Below the pieces are notes generated by a model. That model searched no databases and had not been told where the DNA came from. It was given only the letters and a program-made list of their open reading frames with translations. Of a stretch of DNA of 64,000 bases, positions 3,908 to 9,960 are shown in pieces; the first letter of the stretch is position 1; each line of letters starts with the position of its first letter. The stretch is from Saccostrea echinata (Eukaryota): the NCBI RefSeq assembly GCF_033153115.1, contig NW_026889750.1:24924001-24988000 (forward strand), read 5' to 3'. The position numbers were made by a program, and so were the translations under genes.

Positions 3908-3996
<89 letters not shown>

Positions 3997-4026: not shown

Positions 4027-4152
4027 CCATGTCCAAATAAATTAATAGGCCTACACAGTCTCGTAAAATCTCACTTCCGGTAAACTACTTCCGGAGACAA
4101 CTTGGAGATCGATATATAGTGCAATTATAGTAGATTGGCGGCGTATACGGTT

Positions 4153-6487
4153 ATGACAATTTGTTTTGTATTCGATTGTAACCACCAAGGGTTGAGAAAA
4201 ACATGTAAGATGTTTCGCTTCCCAACCAGCCTCGCATTGGCGAAGAAATGGGAAAAACTTTGCAGGTACGTATCATCACTTATCATATCTTTGACCTTTG
4301 TCATCTGTTTGTACGTAGAATGCTGTATACATTTCAGAGCATGTATCAATATATGACTTTTTAAAACGTTTATTAATAAAACAGACGTAAGGATAGAAGC
4401 ATGATCCCTCAGAATGACAGGATCTGCAGCTGTCACTTTGTAGATGGTGAGAAGCGTAATGGCCCCACCCTCTTCCCATGGAGTTGTGGAAAAATGTTCA
4501 ATTTCCCTGATCCGAGCAAAATAAACAGGTACTGTATAACAGGGCTACTTTTATATAGTGTAGTAAAACATGATTTTGTTTATATGTTTTTCTGATGGAA
4601 TAAACAATCATATATTAACTGATTAAAGCTAAGTTTTCAGTGCATAAAATGTTACATTTTATTTTTGTTCAGCTTGTCGAGAACCGGAAAAAAAGAGATA
4701 AAAGAAAAAGCAGTCTCTGAAGACCAGTGTGAATCTACTGCAATGTCATGTCAACCATTACACGTTTCTCTAGATCACACCTATCAGGCTTCATATCATC
4801 AGTTAAAAGAAGAGAATCAGGTAAATATGACAGCTGTACACAAAAATAAGTGACATAGTGCATGTACTTCAATAGTAGCAATAGCATTCACCTTATTAAG
4901 AAAAAAATGTCTGATAGGATATATTAAAACTTGGTGTCTTTGGTATTTTACCTGGTACATGTTTTAATTCTTATTTGTAAGTCGGTATATGTACATTTTA
5001 CATGTATTCACCAGAACCTGAGGCGTGAGGTTGAAGAACTAAGAATACAGGTCAGGATGATGTCAACAAAGCGAGCATTCAGGATTGGTGATATCATAAG
5101 TGAAGAAAGGAAGGTACGTTTCGGAAGATAAATAGTATAAATATATCAGGTATTATATAACATGTATATTATAGTATAAATAGTATATATAAGATAAATA
5201 AGTTTAATTTTGTTATCATTCAATATAGACATTAAATTAAATTTCAGCTATAAAAACCTTGTTAAAACGTTTAAATTTATAGTTGAAAATCTCCTTTCAT
5301 AAAAATAAGCTGTGATCACACATGTCTTTGAACACGATACTTTGCGGTTAAGTATTTTCATTTCAGTTTACATGTTTATTGTGATAATGGGCCAACTGCT
5401 GGACAGTTCATCAGCCTGTGATAAATGACTGGATAAGTGCTAGAACATCCAATGCCAGGAAAGAAAATAAATCTGCTTATATCTTGTAAAACTGTTTATA
5501 TGAAATACTGCTGGACAGTATTTTCATTTTCATGGGCAAATAAATTTGAATAATAAAAGAAAAGAAACATTCTTGACACTGTGTTTTTAATGTCATGTTT
5601 TGATATAGATGCTGATGTACACAAGTCTACGTCCTGACATGTTTCTTGCCATTGATGAAATGATGCAGAGGTTCCAGATAAAGTATATTGATGGATGGAC
5701 ACCATCTTTCATTTCCTTGACTGACCAATTGTTGATGACTTTAATGAAACTGACAATGAACACCCCATTTTTGGACCTAGCTGAGAGGTTCAACACTAGT
5801 GCGTCATCTGTAAATAACATTGTAACTTCTCAGATTTGTGCATTGCATGAAGTTTTATATGAAGGACTCGTAGAGAGTCGCATTCCTTCTCTCCAAAAGT
5901 GCAAGGGGTCTATGCCTATAAGTTTTGGGGATTTCAGTTCATGTAGAATAGTACTTGATGCGACGGAAATCACCCAGGATGTTCCAGGGAATGACATGAG
6001 ATTGCAGGCCAGCACATATAGTGGATACAAAAATTCACACACTGTTAAAAGTGTTACAGGTGTTGCACCAAATGGTGCTTTGGTATTTATTAGTAAATTG
6101 TACCCTGGCAGCACATCTGATGTTGCAATTGTAGAACATTGTAAGGTCTTAGAACAGTTAGCACCAGGTGATATGATCTTAGCAGACAAAGGGTTCACTA
6201 TTCACAAGTTGTTGCCCCAAGGAGTACATTTAAATATTCCTCCCTTTCTCACATCTAAATCCCAGTACACCCCCAGTGAGGTCCAGCTATGTAGAAAAAT
6301 AGCCAAGTCTCGCATACATGTTGAAAGAGCAAATGAACGCATTAAAAATTATGAAATTTTAAGGCATGTCCCTCAGCAATTTAGATACATTTCTACAAAA
6401 GTCTTTCAATTATGCTGTGTTTTAGTCAATTTTCAGGATCCTCTCATGCAAGAAATTGCTCAGAATTTTGCAAGTGTAGACAACTAA
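4153..6487 (+). CDS. ISL2EU transposase, 460 aa: THAP zinc finger, DHxY motif, coiled coil, HTH, DDE_Tnp_4-type catalytic domain. Exons 4153-4265, 4385-4528, 4673-4820, 5015-5113, 5609-6487
   Basis: All four introns GT-AG and in phase (1383 nt). THAP: C-x4-C..FRFP..W..CR..RICSCHF..PTLFP; DHTY; HTH DQLLMTLMKL..DLAERFNTS.SSV; catalytic LDATE, LADKGF, RIHVERAN. Confidence 0.93.
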
Positions 6488-6532
6488 GATGTTAAAATTA
6501 GAATATGTTTTCACCATGTTTAATGTTATATT

Positions 6533-8749
6533 TTATAGCTGTTGTACATAAGGAAGAAATTTACAGAAATAAAAGTCTGTCAAAACAGATATGTTAATTC
6601 CCCAATTGACGTCTTTGTTAATTCTAACAATAGCACAGTCTTTTGGTGTCCAGACCATGAAATCACACAAGGACTTTCCAGTTATGTAAAGTTGTCCTTG
6701 AACTTGATCATAGTATTGGTGGTTTTCTCGTAATCTGTATGATTTCACTCCATGAAAATCCTGAACCTCTGTATGAAAAAATAAATAAAAATATATTTGT
6801 CTCATTTTTATAGAATAAGAATTTTCATTGGTGCTTCAAACATTAAAACACAATATTATGTATTTAGTATAAATTTATAAGTAATTTGTTCCTTACAATA
6901 AAGTGAGAACGCTAATTATATGCCTTGAGTACTAGCATTATAATTACAACAGGAGGAGAAAACTTTTAACAATTGTTACATGGGTACCTAACTTTATCAT
7001 ATAAAACATATATATTGGAGTTATTGAAAATAATTAACATTTTCAAAAAAATACTTAATATACACTATTATTACCTAGGCAGAAATCATTTACTTTTTCA
7101 ATAGCTTCTGGAATGGTCATATTCTTCGCTGAAAAGGGGCATTTCACCTCCAGAATTTCTGGCTTAACGTTTAACATCTCTAACATGTCAGCTAGTCCTG
7201 GATTCTGATAGTTGAATTCGAATGCAGCTGGGCGACGAATGAGTCCATCTGGGCTTGACCCAAGAACCCCATTACAGTGTAGCCAGATACCTTATAAATA
7301 GCATTATAAAGTTACAGGATAACATTATAAAGCAACACTCCGAATATTGTTATGCACTTATGTACAAGAAGACTTGTTATAAACATAACATCAAAACAGT
7401 ATATTCATACTCATTATCTTCAACTTCAGTTTAATAACTGAATTTTAAATTATCTCAAGTACAATTTTTTTTATTATTATTTATTTGCCTTAAAGAAATT
7501 AACATTTTGCTTGATTTATGAAAGAAAAATACCAACCTGTTGGCTCTACAACTGCATCCCCAAAAGTTTTGTACTTTTCAATGGCGACTTTTTCATTGCA
7601 CATCCCCCAAATAATAGCATCCTTTTTTGACAGATCATAAGCTGAACATAGTCTTTTGTATAAGGAGATAGGATATCTATTAAATAAGGAGCAAGAACAT
7701 CTGTTAAATAAGGATCAAATTTTCAATATTTTTGATTTAATTAACTGCTTTTACATGTATTATTTAATTAAATGTACATATAAAGGCATATAACTACAGG
7801 TATACCTATTTCTCTTGATCGCTGCCAAAACACAACCAAAGTTTGATGCTGTTAATCTATTCTTCCTAACAGATGACCACATGCAATTTTCTTTTTGACC
7901 AGTGGTAAGAGAGGCAATCTACAAAAGTCCTTAAACTTAAACAACATTCAAATTAAAACTGAATACTTTCAACTCACTACACAACTTTTTTGTCTTTACC
8001 TGTTGGATTTGTTGCTCATTAATCATTAATTTTTGCTTCATCCAAGCAATCGGATTTTCCGCAGAAATAAATTCCTGGCTAGATATGAGGTCTTCAACTA
8101 GAGGCACTGCAAGTGTGGGTACAGGCGGCTCAGGGGATAGTATCCAATGCATTGCTGTTGATTAAATTAAAAAAAAATTTAAACCCTCATAGAAAAATAA
8201 GGCAAATACTCAATAACCCTGTATTAAACTGCAGTTACATTACCAATTATTAATACCAGTATATATGTTTAATATTTTTTCAAACTTATTTTATTCACTA
8301 CTTCAAATAAGTGTGGGATTTCAATGTATACAATGACATGTGAAAAGAATGTACAAATAACTCCTTCAGAGTAAAAGAAATAGGTTTAAACATAATAAAA
8401 GTGTATTATTAAAAGTTTAATACAAAAACAAGAACAAAAAAAAGACAAGAACAAAGCTAAACATGTGACAATAAAAAAAAGGATCAGATTAACCTGAAAA
8501 TCTCCCCACAGTAGTCAATTTCTGATATAGGAACTCCCTGTCCCTATCATTGACTGGCCTATTTGTTGCCCTAATAATTTTTGACAAAGGTTAAAAAAAT
8601 AGAGCAAAATAAAATGCTAAATGGTTTAACACAAAGGCCTACCATGCAAAATAATTAAATCTGATACTTAAGGTACACTACATATTATCATTCACTACAT
8701 ACTGTAAATTGAAATACAAGTTAAATGCAAACATACATACACACACACA

Positions 8750-8805
<56 letters not shown>

Positions 8806-9586
8806 ATCATATATATTTTGCACATTAGTAAATGTAGTAATCATGAGCTAGCTAACCTGTAATTTACAAATCTGTCTGCTGCAGGGAAAAGGTCCTCCAT
8901 TGTCTTGGTTTGTCGAGGTGGGACCGACTTCGGATTTTTCACCCACGACTGCCGAACATCTGTCTTGGAGACATTCTTATACCTGTTGAGAATTAAATAC
9001 CTGACATACATACTTATTTTATTGAAATTTGTTTAGAACTTGTCCACCGGGGATTGAAAAGAAGTTACATATATTAACATGCATAGCATATTTTATTATG
9101 CTTGTAGGTCCATCGAATGCTTTAAAATAAATTCAATAGATTTATAAGTTGTTTATTGACTAAATAAATTTAGATTAGATTACCCATAGAGAAGGAGGCT
9201 AGCCTTATGGTGACATTTATCCTGCCCATTAACACACTCACAGGTGCTGTTCTCCACATTATAATTCGTTCCAAGACTAATCTATATATTATATATCCAT
9301 TGATAATATATTGATATATTTAGCTCATATATAAGTAGAATCAAACAAAACGTTTTCTTATCATTTTATTTTGTGTATTCAGTCTCAAAATGAAGGGAAA
9401 TCCGCCTACCGTTACATCATAACTCCTGTCTCGCATTGAAGCTTGGACCACACCGCGGACGTATGAAGCTTCCTGGTCATAAATAAACCTCAGTACATGG
9501 TCAGAATGTACAGCTATTTCAGATTTTCTGCTCAATTTTTTGGTTCCAGCTGTATAATTTGCCCAATATAAGATAGAAAACGCCAT
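6533..9586 (-). CDS. ISL2EU accessory protein, 445 aa: SWIM zinc finger + YqaJ (lambda exonuclease-like PD-(D/E)xK) nuclease. Exons 9586-9410, 9281-9184, 8982-8857, 8570-8494, 8154-8000, 7918-7806, 7676-7537, 7290-7075, 6768-6533
   Basis: Eight GT-AG introns, all in phase (1338 nt, no internal stop). VQASMR..Y.V; SWIM CECVNGQDKCHH; YqaJ motifs TTGQKEN..W...RKNRLTASNFG, AIIWGMCNE..A, LGSSPDGLI, LEVKCPF, YYDQVQGQLYITG...CDFMVWT. Confidence 0.93.
8735..8803. repeat. Compound (CA)n(TC)n(TA)n microsatellite in intron 3 of the YqaJ gene
   Basis: Directly visible. Confidence 0.9.
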
Positions 9587-9960
9587 CGCACTATTTACTG
9601 CACACCGGCCGACATGTTTGTTTATCTCCAAAACTGAAATCTCGCGAAGTCTCGCGTAACACTGTGTAGGCCTATATTCCTACTTGTGACCTGTGAGTTT
9701 CACCCTAGCAGTTTAGAAAACTGAGGTTACAGTGAAGTCACGTGTACAGCAGCTAGCTAATAATGACTTTAAAAACGTTTTGAATACATAAAGTCACACC
9801 TCGTTATCTTGAACTCGAGGGGAAAATATTAATAAAGATGATCTTCTAATTAAATTACTTCAACCATCTACACATAAAGCTAGGGACCTATATACTATAG
9901 GCCTACTAGTATATAGGTCCCTGATAAAGCAAAGGGGCTTCAGGCCTATGCTTCGACATA

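Follow-up and report, generated by a model that had tools for sequence, protein, structure and literature searches.

The question raised by positions 4047–9673 of the window (the whole 64,000-nucleotide stretch of Saccostrea echinata DNA analysed here) is whether this segment is a mobile element, of what kind, and whether it still makes the proteins that would move it. The segment measures 5,627 bp, ends in perfect 13-bp terminal inverted repeats and contains two convergent genes. It is an ISL2EU element, as all the published defining features are present; the assignment in the earlier note, made from the sequence alone, agrees with the domains, homologues, motifs, ends and AT duplication reported below. 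ISL2EU is a group of the PHIS superfamily described in Repbase and by Han et al. in 2014 and 2015 (PMC4122938, PMC4482050), and the pairing of a transposase with a YqaJ protein has already been published for it (PMC4482050, PMC4122938). Oyster families, including C. gigas ISL2EU-8_CGi and ISL2EU-10_CGi, are also in Repbase already; the locus adds one more member to a known kind of element and is not a new system. Taken as a whole, it is best explained (probability about 0.88) as an autonomous ISL2EU cut-and-paste DNA transposon of the PHIS superfamily, one of four near-identical copies resulting from recent multiplication. Compared by published descriptions, it shares with ISL2EU the two ORFs (one for a THAP/HTH/DDE_Tnp_4 transposase, the other for a YqaJ protein), the 2-bp AT duplication, a length of about 5 kb, an animal host, a low copy number and short terminal repeats; the C. 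gigas families have 14-bp repeats and AT duplications (PMC4482050 and Table S2), and the repeats here are 13 bp long. Unlike the published elements, it resides in another host species and its repeat begins with an A ahead of the usual GG.

The left terminal inverted repeat, AGGCCTACACAGT (4047..4059, forward strand), is the perfect reverse complement of the right one (9661..9673, reverse strand), as had been read from the sequence. The same left end occurs at 9 places in the genome and the same right end at 8, the sister family included, which points to a low-copy family. Inward of the 13-bp repeats, the similarity between the two element ends is patchy only. The element is flanked by the dinucleotide AT at 4045..4046 and 9674..9675. 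Of the four full-length copies, three are bordered by AT at both ends, copy L002 carries TC in place of AT on one side, and an empty site paralogous to copy L003 has a single AT; the flanks and this empty site together settle the target site duplication as 2-bp AT rather than TA, a choice that the earlier note had left to be made. The left subterminal region (4060..4101, forward strand) contains two ACTTCCGG motifs (4073 and 4087) and a GGAGAYAA motif, all kept in the sister family. The right one (9619..9660, reverse strand) contains two CGCGAGA motifs (9640 and 9650) and GGAGATAAACAAA, and the sister family has it almost unchanged. About 55 bp of subterminal sequence per end is conserved between both families, though synonymous sites between them are saturated. 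The RNA contigs of gene 2 start at 9605–9644, overlapping the right subterminal region, and the motifs at both ends are candidate promoters or binding sites.

Gene 1 (forward strand) has five exons and a 1,383-nt coding sequence with no internal stops; its predicted product of 460 aa comprises THAP, HTH_Tnp_4 and DDE_Tnp_4 domains. Profile and homologue searches were done exon by exon, not on spliced proteins. Exon 1 (4153..4265) encodes the first half of the THAP zinc finger (C4, C9; the exon by itself matches Pfam THAP at E = 5.6e-4) and is 41–53% identical to residues 1–43 of full-length bivalve homologues with PF05485; its splice to exon 2 is present in RNA contigs. The second THAP half (C52, H55, GPTLFPW) lies in exon 2 (4385..4528), which is 53–67% identical to homologues and has both flanking junctions in RNA contigs. 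Exon 3 (4673..4820), a linker weakly conserved in the sister family, has both flanking junctions in contigs of all four runs. Exon 4 (5015..5113) is a linker or coiled coil with an RNA-confirmed acceptor; in comparison with the sister family it shows 0.25 nonsynonymous changes per site (19.8/78.5) and 0.94 synonymous ones (19.2/20.5). Exon 5 (5609..6487) carries HTH_Tnp_4 (E = 3.6e-9), the complete DDE_Tnp_4 catalytic domain (E = 8.4e-39, profile positions 1–158 of 158) and the stop codon. The catalytic triad that had been called complete is indeed so: D117, D193 and E239 of exon 5 (protein residues 285, 361 and 407) match conserved homologue positions. In the two homologue alignments (12 and 36 sequences), no sequence departs from D117 or E239, and D193 is invariant among the 12 and at least 90% conserved among the 36. 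Full-length bivalve homologues (457–483 aa, THAP + HTH + DDE) have the same breakpoints as exons 1, 2 and 5.

Gene 2 (reverse strand) has nine exons and a 1,338-nt coding sequence without internal stops, predicting a 445-aa protein with a SWIM-like zinc finger and a YqaJ/lambda-exonuclease fold. Exon 1 (9410..9586) begins with the ATG at 9586 in a checked frame, and the RNA junction 9410/9281 occurs in three runs. Exon 2 (9184..9281) carries the SWIM-like CxC...CxH signature (CECVNGQDKCHH); Pfam SWIM gives no match on this exon alone, and the exon aligns with the SWIM segments of homologues P0152 and P0198, where the profile matches at E = 2.5e-5 and 4.8e-7, respectively. Exon 3 (8857..8982) is joined to exon 2 in RNA and has 85% amino-acid identity to the sister family. 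Exon 4 (8494..8570) is a 77-nt cassette joining the SWIM and nuclease frames, and exon 5 (8000..8154) opens with a conserved methionine (MHWIL, at 8152). The nuclease domain starts in exon 6 (7806..7918; RLTASNFG), which by itself matches Pfam Viral_alk_exo at E = 0.0046 and whose RNA junctions are seen. Exon 7 (7537..7676) has RNA junctions on both sides; these place its acceptor at 7676 and not at an in-frame alternative at 7700. The catalytic core (SSPDG...LEVKCP) lies in exon 8 (7075..7290; Pfam YqaJ E = 0.035 alone), which is 76% identical to P0123, itself a YqaJ protein at E = 2.2e-15. Exon 9 (6533..6768), joined to exon 8 in RNA, contains the C-terminal part of the domain (YYDQVQGQL) and the stop codon, and gives 1,696 matches with phmmer. 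Since the Pfam matches of single exons are weak, the family assignment depends on homologues and motifs: SPDG and LEVKCP of exon 8, QVQGQL of exon 9 and RLTASNFG of exon 6 are conserved motifs of 25 homologues, and the first two bear out the PD..EVK motif noted previously. The structure model of the 285-aa homologue P0123 (pLDDT 91.9) matches lambda exonuclease and LHK-Exo (E = 1e-8, TM 0.64–0.70 by target). The gene structures proposed in the earlier note, with five and nine exons, are likewise borne out, as all 12 introns are GT–AG and both frames are open; the ORF list within the window contains fragments only, as that note had said.

Related systems differ from this arrangement. PIF/Harbinger elements share a related DDE_Tnp_4 transposase, two genes and an AT-rich target preference; however, Harbinger makes 3-bp TWA duplications, its transposase lacks THAP, and, in place of a nuclease, its second gene encodes a Myb/SANT DNA-binding factor responsible for recruiting the transposase. 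Spy, a PHIS element active in cells (PMC11304231), has a related transposase core but a single ORF, without target site duplication, THAP or nuclease.

The genome contains four full-length copies, 99.1–100% identical, on four contigs with unrelated flanks, all with the same terminal repeats at their ends. Both frames are open and all 12 splice sites are kept in three of them, and divergence outside microsatellites is about 0.1–0.25%. The copy in the window has a private D57 in exon 1 of gene 2, where the other three have N. Segmental duplication as the origin of the four copies was considered and is excluded for the 1.5-kb flanks, which are unrelated. Older decayed copies are also present, and one copy interrupts a repeat of which other members are uninterrupted. 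In each of the 12 exons, out of 14 in both genes, for which the sister family allowed a comparison, nonsynonymous change is 0.085–0.25 per site against synonymous change of 0.63–0.94, which shows purifying selection on all 12. The element is intact in its DNA and recently mobile, as the description of it as young and multi-copy had anticipated; given the low copy number, activity could have ceased.

The RNA evidence comprises transcript contigs from four public runs; contigs drop rare forms, and holes in their coverage prove nothing. PMC4122938 and PMC4482050 contain no statement on the transcripts or splicing of ISL2EU elements; the contigs give both, and the new contribution relative to that work is evidence on splicing, with 9 of the 12 introns spliced as predicted and truncating forms of both genes. 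Both genes are transcribed. The expectation that transcripts would follow the predicted junctions held for those nine introns and failed for the splicing of gene 1 intron 4 and the inclusion of gene 2 exon 4, each seen in none of the four runs. Unexpectedly, gene 1 contigs pass from exon 4 into intron 4 (5114..5608, forward strand), which is retained in all of them, and end at 5532–5574, near AATAAA at 5539 and 5552. Among the contigs of the four runs, donor 5113/5114 is not seen in use, coverage of the DDE exon is zero, and none joins the THAP exons to it. Read-through of intron 4 stops the frame after 5 codons (ORF 4931–5131), and an RNA ending there by polyadenylation would give a 173-aa THAP-only product. 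The Drosophila P element also has a THAP-domain transposase, and when its last intron is not removed, a truncated THAP-containing repressor of transposition is made. Gene 1 resembles it in yielding, in the RNA contigs, a THAP-only RNA with the last intron unremoved; the P element differs in its unrelated catalytic domain, its 8-bp target site duplication and its lack of a nuclease gene. In gene 2, the joint 8154/8857, which skips exon 4, occurs in four runs, and no contig of these runs includes this exon. Skipping brings a stop 8 codons into exon 5 and sets a 141-aa SWIM frame apart from a 285-aa nuclease frame. Since neither intron 4 splicing nor exon 4 inclusion is seen in the four runs, full-length mRNAs of both proteins are without contig support; because of the truncating forms, the full-length proteins may be rarely made or confined to unsampled tissues. 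None of the private bases of the window copy appears in the contigs that cover them (9302, covered by a single contig, has the base of the other copies), so transcription of this particular copy also lacks contig support.

These RNA forms lend some weight to the view, somewhat unlikely in our estimate, that the copies are intact as DNA but active transposase is no longer made, the burst being over and the copies relics. What is made would then be a DNA-binding fragment with THAP only, and a SWIM product apart from a nuclease product, through self-repression or decay of expression. The retained intron 4, the empty DDE exon and the constant skipping of exon 4 fit it; no run contains more than 0.37 of the element's sampled words, and the RefSeq models of relatives in Crassostrea and Saccostrea comprise the DDE part only (229 and 202 aa) or the nuclease only (285 aa). 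However, such low divergence, with three copies keeping both frames and all splice sites, is unexpected after long inactivity, and two element–flank junctions in the RNA contigs match none of the four copies in the assembly. The limits of the contigs also count against this view, as rare isoforms are invisible to them and the runs may have sampled other tissues. An autonomous element that multiplied recently stays the preferred reading.

Another possibility, which appears doubtful, is that the SWIM finger and the nuclease are normally separate proteins, the nuclease of 285 aa starting at the exon 5 methionine and the 445-aa fusion not being the main functional product. The observed mRNA without exon 4 fits it. 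The MHWIL methionine is kept in the sister family, and the 285-aa RefSeq models in Crassostrea begin with it; among at least 12 RefSeq proteins from Crassostrea angulata and C. gigas, eight are annotated as 285-aa YqaJ-only proteins, and the structure model of the 285-aa homologue is a complete lambda-exonuclease-like domain. On the other hand, exon 4 has the same length, AG/GT sites and frame in the sister family, with 64% amino-acid identity and 0.22 nonsynonymous against 0.80 synonymous changes per site. The open frame of gene 2 is weak evidence by itself, because 32 of 652 AG..GT cassettes within the 702-nt interval also restore it; it is conservation that argues for exon 4. Single chains with SWIM and YqaJ are common among homologues (P0152, P0198, P0157, P0190), and coral protein P0221 has an exon 4-like segment between its matches to exons 3 and 5. 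Moreover, eukaryotes translate a second frame inefficiently when one of 141 codons precedes it.

In the autonomous element, the THAP/HTH part would bind the conserved subterminal motifs, and the DDE domain would cut the element ends and join them to a staggered AT target. The nuclease may be an accessory factor digesting 5′ strands at DNA ends made in transposition, whether on the non-transferred strands of the element ends or at the donor break. For the former, Tn7 offers a parallel: its TnsA cuts the 5′ strands, making excision complete. As with TnsA/TnsB, a DDE transposase and a nuclease of the PD-(D/E)xK superfamily, here read from sequence, occur in one element; however, TnsA, an endonuclease, has a restriction-enzyme-like fold, and the nuclease here is, by the P0123 model, closest to lambda exonuclease. 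It resembles lambda exonuclease, LHK-Exo and YqaJ of phage recombination modules in its fold match and catalytic D...ExK motif, and differs in lacking an annealing partner, in having an N-terminal SWIM finger and introns and in residing inside a eukaryotic transposon. The earlier note speculated that the nuclease resects ends and may steer donor-site repair toward homology-directed restoration of the element; excision would then be a net gain of copies. This is unlikely, although the modelled fold is that of 5′-to-3′ resecting exonucleases of phage recombination systems and all compared gene 2 exons are under selection within the element. No Red-beta- or RecT-like annealing partner is found in its 5.6 kb, which hold only two genes; donor-site resection is already done by host enzymes, and action on the element's own 5′ strands, by analogy with TnsA, would account equally for the fold.

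Finally, that both are domesticated host genes and not a mobile element is refuted in spite of their transcription and purifying selection, since, where a single-copy locus might have been found, there are four near-identical copies on four contigs in unrelated flanks with the same terminal repeats and AT duplications, alongside older decayed copies and a copy that interrupts a repeat intact elsewhere.

The transposon in the window occupies positions 4047-9673 (5,627 bp). It starts with AGGCCTACACAGT and terminates in the reverse complement of this sequence; according to a script check, the ends form a perfect 13-bp inverted repeat, with patchy similarity beyond it. Base 1 of the repeat is A, followed by GG, and ISL2EU repeats usually start with GG; the placement of the terminal A inside the element is fixed by the empty site of L003, one of the other full-length copies. 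Gene 1, the transposase gene on the forward strand, comprises exons 4153-4265, 4385-4528, 4673-4820, 5015-5113 and 5609-6487, with a coding sequence of 1,383 nt (460 codons and a stop). Gene 2, the nuclease gene on the reverse strand, comprises exons 9586-9410, 9281-9184, 8982-8857, 8570-8494, 8154-8000, 7918-7806, 7676-7537, 7290-7075 and 6768-6533, with a coding sequence of 1,338 nt (445 codons and a stop). Both models were rebuilt from the sequence and checked by script; neither contains an internal stop and all 12 introns are GT-AG. The genes are convergent, with 45 bp between their stop codons (window 6487-6533). The perfect terminal repeats and the two stop-free, spliceable genes of 5 and 9 exons claimed in the earlier note are thus reproduced, as is its remark that the ORF track shows only fragments, which holds for the mechanical ORF list.

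The element is assigned to ISL2EU (PHIS superfamily) by its domains, its second ORF and its target site duplication. All the defining features testable here (DDE_Tnp_4 with HTH, THAP, a YqaJ ORF, an AT duplication and short repeats) were found, the definition being taken from published descriptions (PMC4482050, PMC4122938, PMC9179366). Han et al. described the Crassostrea gigas families ISL2EU-8_CGi and ISL2EU-10_CGi (Repbase), with 14-bp repeats, AT duplications and the THAP/DDE plus YqaJ pair (PMC4482050). Elements of this kind, with this gene pair and in oysters, are therefore already on record and the advance is modest; the additions made here are a settled target site duplication for this element family, the subterminal motifs that are conserved, the recurrence of a SWIM finger in ORF2 and the finding that the RNAs seen do not match the conserved full-length frames.

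The family has multiplied recently. A search of the genome (923 Mb in 425 contigs) found four full-length copies, namely the window copy, two copies at 99.8% identity and one at 99.1%; their 1.5-kb flanks are mutually dissimilar. Outside microsatellites, about 0.1-0.25% of sites differ between copies. Both frames and all 12 splice sites are kept in three of the four, and in the fourth a 7-bp deletion in gene 1 exon 1 shifts the frame. Older, decayed copies, 80-95% identical, are present on contigs C1 and C46, and end fragments on C36. These results bear out the earlier reading of a young element (four copies at 99% identity or more, with dissimilar flanks) and exclude a pair of domesticated genes, since the element is mobile and multi-copy. 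Amplification of the MITE type is rejected because the genome contains just 9 exact left and 8 exact right ends, the sister family counted; the family is low-copy, without a MITE swarm. Most of the differences among the four copies come from a (CT)n(TA)n microsatellite in gene 2 intron 3 (window 8733-8816).

The flanks read AT on both sides in three of the four full-length copies and TC/AT in the remaining one, and older and sister copies also read ...AT|AGGCC...GGCCT|AT... AT and TA are both palindromes, so the flanks alone cannot tell an AT duplication from a TA duplication with GGCC ends or from the absence of any duplication. The choice between AT and TA, raised in the earlier note, was decided by a search for empty sites. 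Copy L003 sits within a repeat that has more than 1,000 members in the genome; where the repeat is uninterrupted, it reads TAG-AT-TTAATGAAT, and the interrupted member reads TAGAT, then the element, then ATTAAATGAAT. This paralogous empty site contains a single AT and has exactly the length predicted by the AT model. Without a duplication, it would be 2 bp shorter than observed; with a TA duplication, it would be 2 bp longer, and both models are rejected. The length fits the AT model only; the duplication is AT and the element ends are A...T, matching the target A|AT|T published for ISL2EU (PMC4482050).

Among the flanks searched, only those of L003 led to a paralogous empty site that could be used. 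In the genome search, the window copy has a unique left flank and 286 unique bp beside its right end, the flank beside copy L002 is also unique, and neither copy yields an empty site; the repeat matches beside L004 are just 73% identical. In L002 (G000:C2:3631409-3637031), TC replaces AT beside the gene 1 (left) end, with AT on the other side; a base substitution, the insertion of 1 bp or an imprecise event could each account for the TC. The flanks of L003 (G000:C56 around 10977919 and 10983543) and the loci L053-L055 represent a short interspersed repeat, whose members are about 92% mutually identical.

The sister ISL2EU family in this genome shares the 5 + 9 exon layout and the ends, and its exons are about 76% identical. 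Its copies are L031 (G000:C10:7565471-7572212), L032 (C9:50962005-50969703) and L033 (left part, on C15). All the compared exon pieces of L031 are stop-free; hence, the genome has at least two ISL2EU families that look coding-competent. Both genes are under selection. In the 12 exons compared, which are gap-free and alignable and comprise all but gene 1 exons 2 and 3, synonymous differences between the families amount to 0.63-0.94 per site, nearly saturated (at least 0.74 in all exons but one), and nonsynonymous differences to 0.085-0.25 per site in each exon.

About 55 bp at each element end are kept between the two families despite divergence elsewhere. Two (A/G)CTTCCGG motifs at the left end, two CGCGAGA motifs at the right end and a GGAGAYAA motif at both ends are present in both families; the subterminal motifs of the element include ACTTCCGG and CGCGAGA. 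These conserved motifs probably serve as binding sites for the transposase or as parts of promoters. The 5′ leader of gene 2 contains a 6-codon upstream ORF (window 9619-9599, reverse strand; ATG TCG GCC GGT GTG CAG TAA), located before the ATG at 9586.

Domain searches were run exon by exon for both genes. Gene 1 exon 5 alone matches DDE_Tnp_4 across the full profile (E = 8.4e-39) and HTH_Tnp_4 (E = 3.6e-9). Exon 1 alone matches the first half of THAP with E = 5.6e-4, under Pfam's cut-off because an intron splits the domain; the C4, C9, C52, H55 pattern of THAP is present, and exons 1-2 align with homologues carrying PF05485. A word search with gene 1 retrieved 747 relatives, including RefSeq proteins of 457-483 aa with THAP, HTH_Tnp_4 and DDE_Tnp_4 from Ostrea, Crassostrea, Saccostrea, Mya, Dreissena and Haliotis. 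Full-length relatives share the breakpoints of exons 1, 2 and 5 with the window gene. The exon-5 residues D117, D193 and E239 correspond to protein residues 285, 361 and 407. D117 and E239 are invariant among 12 and among 36 relatives; D193 is invariant among the 12 and at least 90% conserved among the 36. Profile matches and residue conservation agree with the previously proposed THAP-DDE transposase with a complete D-D-E motif.

The single-exon Pfam matches of gene 2 are all sub-threshold, the best being Viral_alk_exo (E = 0.0046, exon 6) and YqaJ (E = 0.035, exon 8), and a PDB sequence search with exon 8 returned only noise. For this reason, exon 9 was used as a query against the full library, which gave 1,696 relatives. 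The whole length of one of them, P0123 (285 aa), is 60-77% identical to window exons 5-9 and matches YqaJ with E = 2.2e-15; the longer relatives P0152, P0198, P0157 and P0190 combine SWIM and YqaJ in a single chain. When the window exon peptides were aligned with 25 relatives, every conserved motif was present: CxC...CxH in exon 2, RLTASNFG in exon 6, SPDG and LEVKCP in exon 8 and YYDQVQGQL in exon 9, with SPDG and LEVKCP in nearly invariant columns. The SWIM-like CxCxnCxH signature in exon 2 is CECVNGQDKCHH; it aligns with homologues scoring 4.8e-7 and 2.5e-5 for SWIM. Exon 2 alone has no Pfam SWIM match because the domain spans the exon 1/2 junction.

The best structural matches of the AlphaFold model of P0123 (pLDDT 91.9) are LHK-Exo and lambda exonuclease (E = 1e-8), followed by Cas4-like and herpesvirus alkaline nucleases. 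Judged from the motifs and, for the fold, from this homologue rather than from the window protein, gene 2 is predicted to encode a nuclease of the lambda-exonuclease fold with a SWIM-like finger, in agreement with the SWIM-YqaJ gene with a PD..EVK motif described earlier. The transposase core is 94-95% identical at the protein level to partial RefSeq models from Crassostrea angulata and Saccostrea cucullata (P0028, P0033), and the nuclease merely 60-79% identical to the 285-aa Crassostrea proteins, such as P0123. The difference points either to very unequal rates of evolution in the two genes or to a lack of orthology between the families compared.

The family is transcribed. RNA data were taken from four public runs from three studies and two organisms, as Logan contig sets, which drop rare variants and in which coverage holes prove nothing. 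Spliced GT..AG joints in all four runs indicate that all four are RNA; a retrocopy source of the spliced contigs, considered because one run is labelled 'DNA?', is rejected, as the genome search gave no intron-less, high-identity match. The contigs exactly confirm 9 of the 12 predicted introns (gene 1 introns 1-3 and gene 2 introns 1, 2, 5, 6, 7 and 8) and place the gene 2 exon 7 acceptor at 7676, not at the in-frame alternative 7700. In this respect the splicing proposed in the earlier note stands; the joint of gene 1 exons 4 and 5 and gene 2 exon 4 are both absent from the four runs.

Removal of gene 1 intron 4 is seen in no contig of the four runs. Gene 1 contigs pass from exon 4 into intron 4 and stop at 5532-5574, just past the AATAAA signals at 5539 and 5552; the DDE exon (exon 5) has zero contig coverage in every run, in line with which the best run contains only 0.37 of the element's words. 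The RNA seen would encode 168 residues plus 5 read-through codons, i.e. a THAP-plus-linker protein without the catalytic domain. A loose contig end at 5429 was considered as a splice and rejected, as it derives from an unrelated locus on contig C30 sharing 18 nt with the element.

In all gene 2 contigs, exon 3 is spliced straight to exon 5; the joint leaves out 702 nt, the 77-nt exon 4 among them. The skip shifts the frame to a stop 8 codons into exon 5, so that the mRNA seen carries a 141-codon SWIM frame and a 285-codon nuclease frame starting from the Met at 8152, which is kept in the sister family. The length of 285 aa is also the RefSeq length of eight proteins of C. angulata and C. gigas annotated as 'uncharacterized' or 'YqaJ domain'. 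Since the mRNAs seen are not coding at full length, genome-derived models and RNA-derived annotations disagree, as in the nuclease-only 285-aa RefSeq proteins of Crassostrea.

An open frame alone is weak evidence for exon 4, since 32 of the 652 AG..GT cassettes in the skipped interval also restore the frame. Conservation argues for it more strongly. The sister family retains the length of 77 nt, the two splice sites and the frame, with 64% protein identity, and the flanks barely align; nonsynonymous differences between the families are 0.22 per site versus 0.80 synonymous. The coral protein P0221 has an exon 4-like segment between its matches to exons 3 and 5. Exon 4 is thus judged to be a genuine coding exon, which the dominant RNA in the material sampled leaves out.

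Full-length mRNA for either protein is absent from the contigs of the four runs, which can miss rare forms. This lowers, without excluding, the claim of an active autonomous transposon. At position 9302, the sole covering contig has the base of the other copies and not that of the window copy; the private base at 9418 is unresolved in the contigs and that at 6337 lies within the uncovered exon. The contigs therefore carry no sign of transcription of the window copy itself. Two RNA contigs run from an element end into flanks matching none of the four genomic copies. The flank on an X2 contig is absent from the assembly and so yielded no orthologous empty site, and that on an X1 contig is the AT-rich part of a 45-copy repeat, uninterrupted in the four genomic copies fetched; these novel flanks suggest insertion polymorphism, short of proof. 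Gene 2 RNA contigs extend to 6507, and the gene 1 AATAAA lies farther right (about 6560); a full-length gene 1 mRNA and the gene 2 mRNA would thus overlap at their tails, and double-stranded RNA might arise from them.

The role of the ISL2EU second ORF, the YqaJ nuclease, has been stated as unknown (PMC4482050), and the literature searched contained no experimental ISL2EU transposition, an absence that is not proof. By analogy with the protein families concerned, the THAP/HTH part would bind the conserved element ends, the DDE domain would nick the ends and transfer the 3′ ends into an AT target with a 2-bp stagger, and the nuclease would digest 5′ strands. A complex prediction for the exon-5 transposase product and the 285-aa nuclease homologue scored 0.32 against a mark of 0.34, which speaks neither for nor against binding. 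According to the earlier note, the nuclease may resect the donor-site gap for homologous repair. About equally likely, and preferred here as a guess with a probability of about one in three, is that the nuclease acts at the ends of the element on the strands that are not transferred, by the same logic as TnsA/TnsB in Tn7. The copies with open frames, defined ends, a settled duplication and mapped junctions are a starting point for asking why a cut-and-paste transposon carries a lambda-exonuclease-like enzyme.

It is a tentative and rather unlikely proposal that the element restrains itself by the way in which the RNAs of its two genes are processed. If it did, polyadenylation within intron 4, the last intron of gene 1, which can be likened to the retained third intron of the P element, would give a THAP-only protein that could occupy the element ends as a repressor, and skipping of exon 4 would uncouple the SWIM finger from the nuclease. 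Production of the full-length transposase and of the SWIM-nuclease fusion would then be restricted to settings that reverse both events, the germline being one example.

A (TA)43 microsatellite (window 3910-3995) lies 51 bp to the left of the insertion. A 163-bp tandem repeat (window 10151-10602, 2.7 copies) begins about 480 bp beyond the right end of the element; in the genome search it had more than 6,000 first-look candidates, often in longer arrays, which assigns the repeat to a satellite-like family.
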